NCBI RefSeq assembly: GCF_001194135.2 | Contig: NC_068987.1 | Coordinates: 62,178,770 to 62,242,769, forward strand | Source of the DNA: Octopus bimaculoides | Lineage: Eukaryota | DNA: 64,000 nucleotides | Direction: 5' to 3' | In this document: positions 12,892 through 50,767 of the stretch, piece by piece | Layout: each line of letters opens with the position of its first letter | How positions within the stretch are numbered: the stretch's first letter is position 1 | Translations under genes and position numbers: made by a program | Notes under the pieces: model-generated | What the model saw: only the letters and a program-made list of their open reading frames with translations | Databases searched by the model: none | Told to the model about the DNA's origin: nothing

Positions 12892-12970
<79 letters not shown>

Positions 12971-13086
12971 NNNNNNNNNNNNNNNNNNNNNNNNNNNNNN
13001 NNNNNNNNNNNNNNNNNNNNNNNNNNNNNNNNNNNNNNNNNNNNNNNNNNNNNNNNNNNNNNNNTTTTTTTTTTTTTTTTGTCTAG

Positions 13087-40389: not shown

Positions 40390-43300
40390 TTATGTGTCTT
40401 TTTCTGCCACATCAGCAATAGTAGACTGAGGGGTATCTGTACTGCCTTCATTACATTCTTCTAAGCCTGTATTTCCATCAGTTGCTATTGTATTGCCAGC
40501 TGTGTCATCCTGCGATCCATCTTGGCATTCCTCTTTGGAAACTGCATAATATGAAGCTAACATTTTAGCATAACCTGTATCATCTTTATTAAGTTCAAAA
40601 TCTAAGGATAAAGATTTACTATCAAACCAACAATCTTCACTGTCAGAACTGGATTTAGTTGGTGAATAGTAAGATGCTGAACTTATTTCACTATTGTCTG
40701 TAAATTCTATATTTCCACCAGTTTCAGCATTGTTAGTGGGTGATGTTTGTTCATCTTGGCATATGCTTGCTGATATTTCAGATTCTACCTGTTCTGGAGT
40801 CTCACAAGTCATTGGCTGGTTTTCAGAACAGCTTTCATTTCCTAGAGGCATGTCAACCACTGTATCACTAGATCTATCACTTTGTTGATTGCTGTCATTA
40901 TCAAAATTTTCTCCCAGAGTAATATGTTGGTCTGTTTGAGACAGATTATCATCGCAACAGTCTTTTCCACTTGAGTTGTGTTCTTCAGAACAATTGCTTT
41001 GCTTAGTTAAGTTATCTTCAGTTGCAATCTGGTTTGATTCAGAGATATTATTACTATCTGCACTGAGTGGCTCACAGCTTTCAGTTTCTGTCAGTGGTGA
41101 CTGATCTGATTCAGTAATATTCTGGACAACTTCATTGGTTACTAAAGGTTGATGCATTTGGATTGTATCCTTCGAAGTTTCACTTTTTGTAATTGATTCA
41201 TCTTGAATATTTGATGGCAACTCTTGGTTAAGGTCACTTTCAGTAAATGTACTCTCTTCCCTTGCAGAAATATCCTTTCCATCATTTTCATTTGTAGAGA
41301 TTTCTGACTGTGTATCATGTATGCTTTCCATATCTGTAGTTGTTACATTCTTCTTAGCTGCTTCATTTCTGCAATCTTCATGTGGTGATGAAGGATATTT
41401 TGAAGAAACACAACATACATTGTTATCAATCGGCACACCTTTAACAGTTTCAAGATTAGAGTCAATATTGTCAGAAACGCTAACTATTTTAGCTTTAGGA
41501 TACTTATTCTGTGGAATCAGAAAGAGAAATCCCATGCTGTCAACATCTTCATCAATTCTCTTTACTGGGGAGCTTAATGGAGAAAAGATAACTCGATTTG
41601 CTCGTATTTCTTCTTCCTCTTCCTCAAATGAAGATTCTGTCATTGAATTTGATGGAAAAAAATATTGTGGGTGAGGAGAAGAAGCTCGGGATGAAGATTC
41701 AGGACTATTTTGAGGACAGAGTGGGGACTGTCGGCCAGATAAATTAATTTTTTCTTCAAATTGTTTGGTAATTTTTCTAACAGGAGATTCTTTTGGTTTG
41801 TTCAAGTCCTCCTCGGTTGGTTGATTTAACAAATAGCTGTGATCTGTCAGAAAAGCATCAGCAAAAAGTGCACAATCTTTAATTATATTGGATTCAATCT
41901 CTTGGGAATTCCGTCTTGGTTTTCTTGGACAATCTATGTTATGTAGCTCTTCTTGATTTGTTTTAAACATAGAGTTTGTATCTTCAGTGACCACTTCTTC
42001 CATAACAGTATCTAGTTGATGGGGAATTGGTGTTATCCTCCCCGTTCGCTTAAGAGAATCGGTAAATGCAGCATATTCTCTGAAGGCATTCATTTCTGCT
42101 TCAGTAGCATTATATGGTAATCTGTCCCATCCCTTTTGAGAGAAAGCAGGATTCATTCTACTGTCTCTTTGATTGTCAGGAATATTTTTGGTAGTTTCTG
42201 AACCCTTTTCTGCAAGAAACGTTCTGATCTCACTGCTAATTGAGCCTACAAATACATTCTCTCTTTCATTGTCTTCATCTTTGACAGCAGGTGCAATATT
42301 GTCATGTTGCATGGTGACACTTTCAAATTCAGACTCAGAGTTATGTGTTAACGTTTCTACCTTAAATACTTTTGTTTCTTCATCAACATCGATAGAACAT
42401 TCTTGGAGATTTTTAGTTGGTTTTTCTGACACTTCACTATCTATGGAAGACATCTGTTCTGATTCACTAACAATGGTAACGTTATATTCTTTAAAATATT
42501 CATTTGAACTGTCAGAAACATCACTTTCTTTCGAAGATGTTTCTGTCGAATCTTTGACATTTGAAGGGCTACATTCTTCTTCAAGGTTTTCAACCAAAGT
42601 ACTTGGTAGTTCACAGTCTTTAGAAGACATCTGTGTTGATTCAGTAAATATTTTCTCAACATCATGAGGATTCTCTTTTGCAATTCCTTCCAAAATGTTT
42701 TGTAACTCACTATCTTCTGCAGATAATTTTATTGATTCAGTGATTATATCATTAACAAATTTTAGAATCTGATCATCTTGATATTTACAGAGGGAATGAG
42801 GAGAAAGCTCTGGAGATACACCGCTTTGTTTTTCAGGAAGCTTTATTGTAATATCCTTTAGTGTCACAGAACTTAATGAAATATCTGCATCTACATCATC
42901 CAAAACACTTGGAGAAACCTGAGAGCAACGTCTAACCATAGAACGTCCTCTTTCCCTTGGAACAGAAATAAATGTATCATCATCATCACTTATAGAAGGT
43001 GACTGATTATACTTACTTCTAGCAGAATATTTTAAAGGAAATTTTATATTTTCAAAGTCTTCAGAGTCTGTAGATTCTTCAGCACTGCTACTTGGATCAT
43101 ACTCATTATCATCATCACTGAGAATTTTTTCTCTCATGTTATTCTTTTCTAACATATTAGGTAAGACACTTGTTTGCAAATGTTCAGACTTGGTATGGTT
43201 TTCTCTATCATCCTCCACTTCACTTTCCAGTTCATTTAGTTTGAATGTCTCGTCTTTTGTAAATTGACTGCTTAAATTTGGGGCACTGTTAGCAAAGTCT

Positions 43301-44398
43301 TTGACAATGGTTTTTGTTTCATTAAGCTCAAAATGTGGGGAGTTTCCAGCACTCTTTGATTTCTTTGTCAGAAAGTTTTGAGCTGTTTCGTCAATGGTGA
43401 TGAAATCTGAATTTGTATTTAGATATTGCTGACTATCACTATTCTCTAATTCACTTAAACTATCCGATTCATAGTTTAGACTTGCTAACATACTTTCATT
43501 TAGAGTAATGTGTGGAATAGAAACACATGAAGAATTTCCAGATACTGAACTTCGTCTATCATTTGAATAATTTGGCATTAATTCCTTTTTATTAGGTCCT
43601 TCTACTATTGAAATAAATGAACCACTAGCATTTGATGAAGTTTTGACAAAGGTTGGAGTAGACTGGGAACTGCTCTTTGCTAAACCAGCTTCAACATCTT
43701 CTATAGAGTTTGCTACATAAATGATATCATTGCCACACATCACAGCACGTAATTGAGGTGTATGTTCTGAAATGTCATCTTTTGGACCATCTGGAACTGG
43801 GCATTGTGGTCCAATAGTAGGTGTACTCATGAAGTTTTTGCAGTCATTCTCATTTTCTTCTTCGGGTATATTTTCAAGATTATTTTTTACATCATAATGT
43901 GATACATATATGTCAGGAATTGAATCCTCATTGCTAATTTTGTTAATTGAGTCCATGTCAACCACTTCATCACAAGAAGATGGTAATTTTAGGTCAGGTA
44001 AAGCAATATCACTAGCAGACATTGGACCTGTAATAGTGGGTTTTGGTTTTTGCGTTGCTTTTGAAGAAATTTCCATTTGCAGAATTTTGGGATCTTCGGT
44101 AATCTGTATTACTGTTTCATTAAGAGTAATTTCAGGTTTTGGTACATGCAATGGAGTTGGGCTACCATCTCGATCAAAATCAACAGCAAAGTGGTCAGGA
44201 ACTGGATTACTTTTGCTAATCATACCAAAGGTTGTAATAGTGTTTTGGGGCCCAGTGATGCAAGAAATTCCCATTTCATTACTAAGCGAAGGGCTACTAT
44301 TAAACTGGTATGGACTGTTCATGTAATCATCATGCCAGGAAAATGGCATACCAGCATTGTTACCACTCATATCATGACTTCGGCTTGTTGGAAGATCA
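40390..44398 (-). CDS. Giant terminal exon of an uncharacterised acidic, Ser/Thr-rich, probably disordered protein (about 1335 aa; 1326 aa from the first in-exon ATG at 44370)
   Basis: Stop-free for over 4 kb in AT-rich DNA, with no indels or TE insertions. tatttcag acceptor at 44399-44400 coincides with the compositional switch. TAA at 40390-40392. AATAAA on - at 40151-40156 and 40162-40167. No transposase, RT or folded-domain motif recognised. Confidence 0.88.
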
Positions 44399-45766
44399 CT
44401 GAAATACATACGTAAAGATGATTTTGTAAAAGTGGCTGGTAGATTGTGCCATGTTGTCATAGATATGTGTAAATAAAAAATAGGCAACAATGCATTGTGT
44501 ACTCTATAAAACACTGTCTTAAAGAGGATAAAGCATTGAGTAGGGAGAATTTCAGAAAGTGCAAACTAAATATGCAGTCTTTAAAAACAAGTGCAGGTTT
44601 GTCAAGAGTTAATATCCCGCCAAAAAAGGCGTTATGCAGAAGATGTCCATTACAAGGACATCAAGTTACAATGCGGAGGATGACAGGGAATCCCAATAAG
44701 TGACTACTGAAGTGTGACATCTAATTTCAGCTGTACATCATATGGTGAGTAATCACTGTATGCCATGAAATACATTTACAGTCAGTTGTGCTTTAAAAGT
44801 ATGGACAGATTTGGCAGCCATTTAGGTGTAGAATATGTTTAGACAGTTGTGCATCAAAAGGACAAATAGAGCAGACGACCACTGAAGTGTTACATTAAGT
44901 ATATCTATTGTCAATCATGCAACATGAGGGCAGGTAGTTCAGGTAGCCAATGATGTGAAACAAACTATATCTGTTGTCAGTTGTAGATGGGAAAAAGTAG
45001 ATAGCTGATGTGACAAATGAGGTATGATTAAGGCATATTCAGCATCAGTTGTGCATCTATAGGATAAATAACTTGAGCAAGTGTTGAGGTGTGATGTAGA
45101 GTGTATTTACTGCTCTGTACATCTCAAGGTCAGGTAGATTAGAAAACATAGCTTATCAGGTGTTTATGAAAATTAAGCTCTGGTTGCAAAAAGAAACATC
45201 ATGAGGTATATCAAATGCATTGATTGTCTTTGAGGTAGATAAAAAACATGAAAATTTGTTTCTGTGAGATCAGCAAAAAGTATATCAAAACTCCAGCAAG
45301 AGTAGGATAATCTTTGGTAACATAATAATGTAGCTCTTACATTCACTTTAATTTAGCTGTGTATATAATTCTGAACCAAGATTTTCATTTCTATAGTAAT
45401 AGTTCCACAGTACCACTGTTACTTAGGCATTCATGACAAAAAAGAACTGGTGATATAGATGAATGGATAACACAATGATGTACCTGCTCATAAGTTGTGA
45501 GTTCAAATCGACTTGAGTCATTTTGTTGTTTCTAGGCATAATTCTTTATACTATACTTCTGCTTACCTACCTATTGGTAATAAGCATGTGAACGTCTGCA
45601 AGGGCTACAGTATTCTATCCACTGGTGAGAGTAACCTCTGGTTTGTTTCCTGCTTTGAAACTGGAGCAAAGAACCAATCCTTAAAATTCCTGAAAGGTTT
45701 TGGAAACATTTACATGTTTCTTTCATGATTGCAATACTAAGTGTTGAGCTGTATGAATGTAGTTAC

Positions 45767-45887: not shown

Positions 45888-46227
45888 CTGTATGGAAGTT
45901 GAAGAATTTGGTTGGATTTTTAAAGGATTAAATCTGAAACACTCATTATGTTATTTTATTTACAAGTATTCTACTTTACAATACATATGCATGCACACAT
46001 ACACACACACACACGTACACATATGCACCTGCATGTACAGGCATTGCTATTGGGTTAAGAAGTCTGCTTTGTAACCATATAGTGTCATGTTTAGTTCCAC
46101 TATATGGTACCTTAGGCAGGTGTCATCTACTATGGCTTAGGGTTGACCAATGCCTCATGAATAAAAATTAGCTGGATAGAAACTGTGGAAGCATGTTGTC
46201 CATATATATATATATATATATATATAT

Positions 46228-46428
46228 TGCGTACGAACAACCATGCTACATGGCAGTGAAACATGGGCTGTAACTGCTGAGGACATACGTAAGCTCGCAA
46301 GGAATGAAGCCAGTATGCTCCGTTGGATGTGTAATGTCAATGTGAATACCCGTCAGAGTGTAAGTATCTTGAGAGAAAAGCTGAACATTAGAAGCATCAG
46401 TTGTGGCGTGCAAGAGAGACGATTGCGC
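46228..46428 (+). mobile_element. 5'-truncated, apparently young RTE LINE fragment inside a (TA)n tract, continuing into an N gap
   Basis: Uninterrupted MLHGSETWAVTAEDIRKLARNEASMLRWMCNVNVNTRQSVSILREKLNIRSISCGVQERRLR; (TA)n on both sides. Confidence 0.85.
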
Positions 46429-46655
46429 NNNNNNNNNNNNNNNNNNNNNNNNNNNNNNNNNNNNNNNNNNNNNNNNNNNNNNNNNNNNNNNNNNNNNNNN
46501 NNNNNNNNNNNNNNNNNNNNNNNNNNNNNNNNNNNNNNNNNNNNNNNNNNNNNNNNNNNNNNNNNNNNNNNNNNNNNNNNNNNNNNNNNNNNNNNNNNNN
46601 NNNNNNNNNNNNNNNNNNNNNNNNNNNNNNNNNNNNNNNNNNNNNNNNNNNNNNN
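46429..46655. other. Assembly gap (N run)
   Basis: Other gaps: 5930-5939, 9045-9054, 12971-13064, 27759-27768. Confidence 1.
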
Positions 46656-46694
<39 letters not shown>

Positions 46695-48542
46695 GAGGGC
46701 TTCCATGCAGTTTCACAGACACACACGTGTGTGTGTCTGTGCGTGTGCTTGTGTAGGTCTTTATAATGCCACCATTCCACTGACAGTGATAATGTTTATG
46801 TCCCACACAAGCAAAAATTCTGGCACTTCATGTGAGGTCATGAAATAAAGTACTTTAGTTGAAAACAAGCAAAAGTCAGTGTCTGGAAGAGCATGTAGCT
46901 GTACAAATCCACAAGCAACAAATCTTGTCTAACCCATGCCAGCATAGAAAAGCAGTGGATATATAAAGAATATTGATGATGACAATGATATACCACAAAT
47001 CTGTGCACTCATACATATACATACTCGCAGGTGTACAACTGAAACAAAATATAATATAATAATAATATAACAATAATCCTTTCTACTAAAAGCACAGGAC
47101 CTGAAATTTGAGGAGAGGACTAGTCAAACCCCAGTGTTTCACTGGTACCTAATTTATCAACCCCAAAAGGATGAAAGGCAAAATCGACCATGGTGGAATT
47201 TGAACTCAGAACATAAAGATGGATGAAATGTTGCAAAGCATTTTGCCTGACATGCTAACGATTCTGCCAGCTTGCCACCTTAACAACAACAACCCTTTCT
47301 ACTATAGGCACAAGGTCTGAAATTTTTTAGGGTATGTAGGGGCTAGTCGATTAAATTGATTCTTGGGCTCAATTGGTACTTATTTTTATCAATCTGAAAG
47401 GATGAAAGGCAAAGTCAACTTTAGTGGAATTTGAACTCAGATCATAAATATGGTTAGAATACCACTAAGCATTTTGTCTGGTATACTAACGATTCTACCA
47501 GGAAGTTGGTCAATACTGTTGACACCAATAGTGTATTGGTACTTCACTTTACTGAGTCTGGAAAGATGAAAAGCAAAGCTGATCCTGACAGGATTTGAAC
47601 TCAGAATGTAAAGAGATGGAACATCTTTTAATGCTTTAATACTTCTGCTAATCTAGATACAATTCTGAATTGCAACAATTAATGATAGCAAGGTCTTTGA
47701 CAAGAATGCCTTGAATAATCACATTTGCTGTCAATATTAGCCAAAAAATATCAAGACGGACAAATTTTTCTATGGATCTAAATTTCTTAAAGCCTGTGTT
47801 GTACATTTTTAATATTATGTGATATTGAAAAGATATTAATTGATTGCTGTTTAAGTTACAATAGTAAAGGACTATGCATTGTTAAAAATAGTATAGCTGT
47901 GTGGTTTAAGTTAATTCCTCACCATGTGGCTTTCGATTCTGTCCCACTGCATGTCTATATGTCTAAACTCGGCTTGCGAAGACCTGTTGGGGCAAGTGAA
48001 ATTGAAATCATGATTGAACCAAATTCAATGACTGGCACCGGTGCCAGTGGAGTCCTAAGAGCACCATCCAAGCATAATCATTGCCAGAGTAGCTGTCTGG
48101 CTTCCGTGCCAGTGGCACGTAAATAGCACCATTTGAGCGTGATCATTACCAGCGTTGACTTACTGGCACAGGAGCCAGTCCACTCGCCAATTAATACAAG
48201 AAATCATCATATAGATATTATCATTGCTACGATTTTTCAAGATTGTTTGCAATCATTTTACTCTAATTTGTTTGTTTAAACATTGCATGACACACAATTG
48301 CAAATAATAATCTACGGAAAATTCTTATTTCTTATTAAATAGTGTAGCTCATTAGATCAGCCGAAGGTCTTAAAGCCATTCACCATATTTGAGAGGATTA
48401 AGAAAAAAAATGTAAATAAAAGAAGAGAAAAAAGAACAAAGTACTCTAAAGATAATTATGAAATAGATTAGTTCTGAAGTACTTGATATAACGACATTTC
48501 TATTTAGAAAGCCTGTGTTGATTAAATCTGGGATAATCTTAC

Positions 48543-50584: not shown

Positions 50585-50767
50585 TTACTGTGGATCAATA
50601 CCCAAAACTGAACAGGTAGTGTGCCATATAGCTTGTTGAAGCTGCATGGAATTTGACAGTTTACTGGATGTAGCTTTTTCACAATTTTCATAGTAACCAC
50701 CACTTTGCTTCTCGAGGTCTGGAGATAAGGCCACATGTAAAACTGTATCTGCACCCTGTTCAGGTGT
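50585..50767 (-). CDS. DHRSX: DHRSX-like SDR, terminal coding exon (183 nt)
   Basis: tttttcag acceptor; encodes TPEQGADTVLHVALSPDLEKQSGGYYENCEKATSSKLSNSMQLQQAIWHTTCSVLGIDPQ*. Confidence 0.9.
   Translation of the reverse strand, partial: TPEQGADTVLHVALSPDLEKQSGGYYENCEKATSSKLSNSMQLQQAIWHTTCSVLGIDPQ

Follow-up and report, generated by a model that had tools for sequence, protein, structure and literature searches.

A conserved amphipathic helix in the coleoid-restricted disordered tail of an octopus short-chain dehydrogenase/reductase: a candidate docking helix

D-AKAP1 (AKAP1), one of the A-kinase anchoring proteins (AKAPs), combines an N-terminal membrane anchor with a long chain in the cytosol, disordered for the most part, in which one short docking helix is found together with further short motifs. 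It is found at the outer membrane of mitochondria (PMC12083921). The face that AKAP helices turn to the dimerization/docking (D/D) domain of the regulatory (R) subunits of PKA has hydrophobic or small side chains at positions 2, 5, 6, 9, 10, 13, 14 and 17, and type I (RI-selective) AKAPs have FA or YA at helix positions 1-2 (PMC12083921). The members of the D/D superfamily bind such helices with differing preferences (PMC8339350). Here we describe an amphipathic helix in LOC106884525, an uncharacterized protein encoded on the minus strand of a 64,000-nucleotide stretch of the Octopus bimaculoides genome (RefSeq assembly GCF_001194135.2, contig NC_068987.1, forward-strand positions 62,178,770 to 62,242,769), which we call the window and in which positions are counted unless another locus is named. 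We favor, with some reserve, the interpretation that this is a selected docking helix, folding on binding, in the multi-motif scaffold tail of a probably membrane-bound short-chain dehydrogenase/reductase (SDR).

The helix is contained in the peptide ILKFVNDIITESIK, the minus-strand translation of positions 42727-42768, which the initial annotation had singled out as an RII-binding helix between the flanks QDDQ and IKLS; translation bore out the sequence, its site and its flanks. It belongs to a tail of about 1335 residues that is intrinsically disordered and holds about a dozen short conserved islands. A 956-residue AlphaFold2 model of this tail has a mean predicted local distance difference test score (pLDDT) of 35 and shows helices at only a few conserved islands, and between octopus and cuttlefish the overall tail identity is 26%. 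Conservation was assessed in four orthologues, from three octopods and one cuttlefish. Across these the 18-residue window QDDQILKFVNDIITESIK has 12 invariant columns against a tail mean of 3.0, which makes it joint first among the non-overlapping windows of the tail; 54 of 1300 overlapping windows reach the score of the exact helix window. The islands shared by octopus and cuttlefish include, besides the helix, FSWHxDYMNSPYQ, FMxTPTI, RAVMCGNDI, LNESML, ERGRxMVRRxS, QKGWDRLP, CPQNSP and SEDCWFDS. Conservation in orthologues had been set beforehand as the test that the proposed helix had to pass, and as the best-conserved island of such a divergent tail it was not refuted.

Structure prediction agrees with this picture. 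In a 100-residue AlphaFold2 model residues 34-69 form a helix with a block-mean pLDDT of 78-88 over the motif, and in the 956-residue model the helix spans residues 515-542 at a pLDDT of 55-62. The hydrophobic moment of 0.50-0.55 falls in the top ~2% of tail windows, and the region carries a net charge of -5 over 26 residues. The modeled helix is amphipathic and predicted with confidence, and by its pLDDT of 78-88 and its hydrophobic moment it has the amphipathic helical character of AKAP helices. In the cuttlefish a proline stands at either end of it (P-YQDNMILEFVNGIITESVKIVQQSKT-P) and the helices that follow it only in octopods are deleted, which indicates that the conserved unit is a single helix of ~22 residues. 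The orthologues keep its hydrophobic face (I, F, V, I/V, I, I/V), with conservative changes (I/V, L/I); on the polar side they differ by K->E and D->G. Directly after the helix stands a second amphipathic stretch, ELQNILEGIAKE, which departs from the RII-binding consensus given below at its last position only; it is octopod-specific and deleted in the cuttlefish. Inspection of the helix and its flanks by eye for LC3-interacting region (LIR), nuclear export signal (NES), PxIxIT and coiled-coil readings found no fit to any of these consensuses. The only PDB match of the helix in a phmmer search, a pyocin immunity protein at E = 0.32, is noise, and Pfam matches to EAD1 and colicin-immunity families at E ~0.1, obtained with the ORF, the helix peptides and the orthologues, were dismissed as weak.

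The helix is encoded in a stop-to-stop open reading frame (ORF) at 40390-44565, which with its 1391 codons is by far the longest frame of the window (G+C 35%). The initial annotation had taken its product for an orphan protein. The frame is not free-standing: it is the giant last exon of LOC106884525, a protein of 1669 residues (P0002), and is spliced in phase to upstream exons encoding an SDR domain. A canonical GT-AG intron of consistent phase connects the donor CA|gtaagt at 50591 with the acceptor ttcag|T at 44398, the split codon CA|T coding for His. The exon or exons for residues 1-74 of P0002, including exon 1, lie beyond the window end. The tail exon is single copy in the O. bimaculoides genome, is coding and is under purifying selection, its ratio of nonsynonymous to synonymous substitution rates (dN/dS) being 0.39 at a dS of 0.186 against a second Octopus species. 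The Argonauta hians gene model shows the same fusion of SDR and tail. The cuttlefish gene model begins inside the big exon; as the cuttlefish DNA has the matching acceptor and an in-frame DLPSSRSHE before the annotated Met, this model is N-terminally truncated. SDR exons were not found within 10 kb upstream of the cuttlefish tail exon; the shared acceptor and DLPSSRSHE still mark the exon as internal. The cuttlefish intron before the tail exon (L005 7037-7507, minus strand) contains a fragment of a DDE_3 (Tc1/mariner-type) transposase (E = 4e-13).

The N-terminal 335 residues of P0002 match Pfam adh_short (PF00106) with 100.5 bits (E = 1.1e-28), the gathering cut-off being 26.6 bits, and contain the SDR motifs TGGTTGIG, NNAG and YSQSK (YxxxK). 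The best relatives in the PDB are a mycobacterial SDR and protochlorophyllide reductases (POR), with E-values down to 1.8e-28. This adh_short match and these cofactor-binding and catalytic motifs are shared with RDH11-14, DHRS13, DHRSX and POR-type SDRs. Membrane-anchored retinol dehydrogenases (RDHs) have an N-terminal hydrophobic segment, and P0002 likewise begins with one, MWQMLLDWLWIVWNFMLLYYIGV, ahead of its SDR domain, from which its localization would follow. We know of no SDR of the RDH11-14, DHRS13, DHRSX or POR type with a disordered C-terminal extension of ~1335 residues, and a canonical splice joining an RDH/POR-type SDR to such a tail is an unusual architecture. When 1.84 billion representative proteins were searched exhaustively with a profile of the tail, the three cephalopod orthologues were recovered and no homologues outside coleoids; the sole additional match, a bacterial repeat protein at E = 8e-4, is spurious. 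Two word-indexed searches yielded no further tail orthologues beyond the three octopods and one cuttlefish. LOC106884525 is an SDR of the RDH/POR type, probably membrane-bound, with a coleoid-restricted tail.

A second conserved island lies upstream of the helix. The three RRxS sites reported initially, DRRSS, VRRCS and PRRNS, are all present in the tail (Table 1), and the middle one is embedded in an invariant pattern, E-R-G-R-x-M-x-R-R-x-S (E816, R817, G818, R819, M821, R823, R824 and S826 of P0002), so that M[VI]RRxS recurs across the orthologues 55-62 residues upstream of the helix. The O. bimaculoides tail is enriched in RRx[ST], with 3 sites observed against 0.17 expected (P = 0.0003); the other three orthologues have 2 sites each against 0.17-0.36 expected (P = 0.01-0.05).

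These features suggest how the tail might function. Its best-conserved island, the core of which is encoded at 42727-42768, would be an acidic amphipathic alpha-helix of 22-35 residues, which folds on binding as its aliphatic face enters a hydrophobic groove of a partner protein. Given such docking, the tail would act as a multi-motif scaffold held at the membrane by the N-terminal hydrophobic segment and the SDR domain, with the invariant RRxS 55 residues upstream as a likely phospho-switch near the docking site. Three points weigh against this interpretation. The docking mechanism is read from anatomy only; N, T, E and K of the polar face are also invariant, which a helix with more than one buried side, as in a bundle or an intramolecular contact, would explain as well; and four orthologues are too few for statistics on face-specific conservation.

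The R-subunit D/D domain of PKA is the most concrete partner candidate that can be named, and one that the sequence tests do not favor. On this account the helix would dock in the D/D groove of RII (or RI), the SDR tail would be a cephalopod-specific anchor and the RRxS a substrate of the anchored kinase. We regard this as rather unlikely. The RII-binding consensus [AVLISE]xx[AVLIF][AVLI]xx[AVLI][AVLIF]xx[AVLISE], reportedly from Hundsrucker and colleagues in 2010, has a single match in the ORF, the 12-residue ILKFVNDIITES (ORF residues 600-611), and each of the four orthologues has one match, at the same place. Shuffled ORFs or tails contain 0.45-0.83 matches each (P = 0.35-0.54), which puts the helix match at chance level and upholds the caution, voiced from the outset, that so permissive a consensus is not proof by itself. 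Counting Q599 as position 1, the eight D/D-face positions of the octopus helix are filled by I,F,V,I,I,S,I,S and those of the cuttlefish helix by I,F,V,I,I,S,V,V. The helix obeys the positional rule, which has little discriminating power: any well-formed aliphatic amphipathic helix passes both it and the consensus, and disordered regions hold far more conserved helical motifs than there are AKAP helices. The RI-selective FA/YA motif is lacking: octopods have Q-I at positions 1-2 and the cuttlefish has M-I, and the other register gives Y-Q.

More stringent comparisons point the same way. Neither the ORF, its 57- and 25-residue peptides, P0002 nor P0005 matched Pfam RII_binding_1 (PF10522) or AKAP families at E <= 10, and no WSK match occurs in the helix protein. 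A genome-wide octopus scan with PF10522 also gave no match, but its controls were equally silent; a search with the D-AKAP2 helix for an octopus AKAP orthologue, meant to calibrate the yardstick, found nothing, and both are uninformative. Profiles were built from nine canonical AKAP helices, among them those of gravin, D-AKAP1, AKAP220 and AKAP-KL. The sequences of the other five were verified, AKAP18, D-AKAP2, Ht31 and AKAP79 in PDB entries 4zp3, 3im4/2hwn, 2drn and 2h9r, and AKAP-IS and again Ht31 in papers; entry 2h9r carries LLIETASSLVKNAIQLSIEQL, so the AKAP79 helix with which the octopus peptide was initially aligned had been given correctly. With a hidden Markov model (HMM) the known AKAPs, each left out in turn, score 5.4-28 bits and the cephalopod helix 0.8-5.2 bits. 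With a full position-specific scoring matrix (PSSM) the corresponding values are 6.9-36.9 and -4.3 to -0.7 bits, and within its own protein the helix falls outside the top windows. A PSSM of the hydrophobic face only gives 6.6-19.7 bits for the known AKAPs and 3.2-6.1 bits for the helix; here the helix ranks 1, 1, 2 and 3 within its own protein across the four species, and is thus the best window in two of them, yet shuffled tails attain its score 46% of the time. The misfit lies mainly in the N-terminal half. In the register of the consensus Gln occupies position 2; at position 6 the helix has Ile against Ala or Ser in each of the nine references, and at position 9 it has a Phe that is seen in no reference. 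By none of the three profiles does the helix resemble the established RII- or RI-binding helices.

As to the other side of the putative interface, octopus has cognate R subunits with a conserved docking groove, both an RII and an RI exon being present. The D/D domain of the RII exon matches human RIIalpha with E = 1.8e-13 and is almost identical to it in helix I. This could be counted in favor of PKA binding; it also makes the octopus RII groove vertebrate-like, for which reason the vertebrate AKAP yardstick should apply. At position 3 the canonical octopus RII (L002, G000:C5:122685876-122685977, minus strand) has Phe (MSFEIPPGL), and mammalian RIIalpha has Ile3, one of two isoleucines that are key anchoring determinants (PMC8339350).

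The acidic context and the nearby invariant RRxS raise the odds of PKA binding and the poor profile fit lowers them. Also in its favor are the isolated position of the helix between disordered flanks, the enrichment of RRx[ST] and the fact that most vertebrate AKAPs are themselves lineage-specific inventions. From the initial proposal of a cephalopod AKAP there stand a conserved, amphipathic helix, a genome with RII and an invariant RRxS; the consensus match, being at chance level, and the profile and Pfam comparisons do not support it. Judged by its sequence, the helix is a candidate AKAP helix, neither a demonstrated nor a favored one.

Invariance extends from the hydrophobic face to polar N, T, E and K, a pattern to be expected where burial is not confined to a single side. 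It would also suit a helix that packs back on the SDR domain and regulates it, or one through which the tail associates with itself, and in octopods the AlphaFold2 helix runs on into two further helices. We consider such a role quite unlikely, because those following helices are deleted in the cuttlefish, a coiled coil would normally be longer than the 18-24 residues between the proline boundaries, tertiary packing is not predicted with confidence by AlphaFold2 (predicted template modelling score (pTM) 0.21-0.29) and more than 500 disordered residues separate the helix from the SDR domain.

It is conceivable that the groove belongs to a D/D (RIIa-fold) protein other than canonical RII or RI, such as an R2D2 protein (SPA17, ROPN1L), DPY30 or an RII-like paralogue. 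The octopus genome encodes at least four RIIa-domain proteins, a SPA17-like one and an RII-like paralogue among them besides RI and RII, the binding preferences within the superfamily differ (PMC8339350), and a non-canonical helix could suit a non-canonical groove. Positive evidence is nil, however, and the chance-level pattern argument applies here as it does to AKAPs, which leaves such a partner highly improbable. The RII-like paralogue (L004, G000:C22:18700618-18700725, minus strand, with its surroundings) is a complete PKA regulatory subunit of 386 residues in a single open frame, with a D/D domain, an RRHS inhibitor site and, by eye, apparently two cyclic-nucleotide domains. It differs from the canonical RII exon in helix I (PEGLGDMLRD) and looks like an intronless, retrogene-type copy. 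Finally, the scores of the helix with the consensus and the PSSM, which are at the level of shuffled sequence, might be taken to mean that it is an ordinary, functionless hydrophobic-periodic stretch of the tail, which is very improbable given a confidently predicted helix and the invariance of 12 of its 18 columns across lineages that share only 26% identity in the tail otherwise.

Table 1. Features of the LOC106884525 locus in the window
Feature	Position	Strand	Remarks
Conserved helix island YQDDQILKFVNDIITESIK	42727..42783	-	ORF aa 595-613, P0002 aa 873-891; 13/19 columns invariant, three octopods and cuttlefish
AlphaFold2 helix	42679..42786	-	ORF aa 594-629; only first ~22 residues kept in cuttlefish
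Helix-containing 30-mer SLCKYQDDQILKFVNDIITESIKLSAEDSE		-	
RII-binding consensus match	42733-42768	-	
Second amphipathic stretch	42673-42708	-	
ERGRSMVRRCS	42922..42954	-	basophilic-kinase (PKA-type RRxS) consensus, 55 residues upstream of helix; VRRCS at 42922-42933
RRSS (in DRRSS)	43546..43557	-	O. bimaculoides only
RRNS (in PRRNS)	41905..41916	-	otherwise only in second Octopus species
FSQKGWDRLP	42115-42144	-	conserved as strongly as helix (12/18 invariant); no Pfam/PDB match
FSWHDDYMNSPYQ	44305-44343	-	conserved as strongly as helix (12/18 invariant); no Pfam/PDB match
SEDCWFDS	40618-40641	-	
RVIFS	41581-41595	-	
LHVP	44140-44151	-	
Terminal coding exon, ~1335 codons and stop	40390..44398	-	disordered tail of LOC106884525; tblastn of P0002, 100% match across exon
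Five upstream exons (SDR aa 75-334)	~58726-58658, 55297-55181, 53167-52958, 52410-52189, 50806-50591	-	tblastn of P0002

Several further elements of the tail may be mentioned. FSQKGWDRLP is followed by a predicted helix, TEAEMNAFREYAAFTDSLKR, with a pLDDT of up to 70. SEDCWFDS, which follows an acidic, Ser-rich tract, is unchanged across the four orthologues; by its look it may be an FFAT-like (VAP-binding) or other acidic-aromatic motif. RVIFS fits the PP1-docking RVxF in octopods, and the cuttlefish has QLFFS; LHVP fits the calcineurin LxVP in octopods, and the cuttlefish has no LxVP. Both are weak and lineage-limited. The cuttlefish tail has about seven tandem copies of PVEQATSPEIEPDC, which are absent from octopods. 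Elsewhere in the window, assembly gaps (351 N in total) at 46180-46848 and ~12950-13070 are flanked by TA-rich microsatellite, translated as (YI)n, and an ORF fragment beside the first gap, TTMLHGSETWAVTAEDIRKLARNEASMLRWMCNV, looks by eye like the C-terminal end of a retroelement ORF and has no Pfam match.

Whatever its partner, LOC106884525 is a clear case of a lineage-restricted scaffold, in which a conserved RDH-type SDR is joined to a coleoid-acquired tail of ~1335 residues with about a dozen motifs, the helix being the strongest. The boldest version, a coleoid-specific, membrane-anchored SDR-AKAP that tethers PKA RII, or its intronless RII-like relative, beside the invariant RRxS, strikes us as doubtful. 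If it is true, cephalopods would have invented kinase anchoring independently, in parallel with the AKAP expansion of vertebrates, and this would be the first AKAP on a dehydrogenase. PKA binding would then tie cAMP signaling to a membrane dehydrogenase, mean that cephalopod anchors arose independently of the vertebrate AKAP burst and bear on the convergent complexity of cephalopod nervous systems as well as on AKAP evolution. If the partner is another protein, the helix provides a ready bait for a cephalopod-specific interaction.

Among described systems AKAP79/AKAP5 (LLIETASSLVKNAIQLSIEQL) and gravin/AKAP12 (...KLVQNIIQTAVDQF...) likewise have an amphipathic helix that stands isolated, in an acidic context, within a long disordered scaffold. 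The octopus FVNDIITESI parallels LVKNAIQLSI of AKAP79 and LVQNIIQTAV of gravin, with V, I, S/A and I/V at equal spacing. The N-terminal half of the octopus helix, with Q at position 2, Ile at position 6 and Phe at position 9, is unlike theirs; its profile scores fall well under those of all left-out AKAPs, and the surrounding protein has no homology to these scaffolds. AKAP1 is an architectural analogue, since its single docking helix is likewise carried on a long disordered chain behind a membrane anchor. Unlike LOC106884525 it contains KH and Tudor domains but lacks an SDR domain; its helix scores 5.4-13.5 bits when left out, which the octopus helix does not reach; and the exhaustive profile search described above detected no homology to AKAP1. 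Molecular recognition features (MoRFs) and other helical short linear motifs are also short conserved helical islands in fast-evolving disordered chains; MoRF is a class description that names no partner, and the octopus helix is one of about a dozen islands in its chain. The helix would work like an AKAP-type or other MoRF-type docking helix; it has no homology to any AKAP and cannot be shown to belong to an AKAP family. No relevant description of cephalopod AKAPs was found in the literature searched. As most vertebrate AKAPs are lineage-specific, the independent invention of one in cephalopods is plausible in principle.

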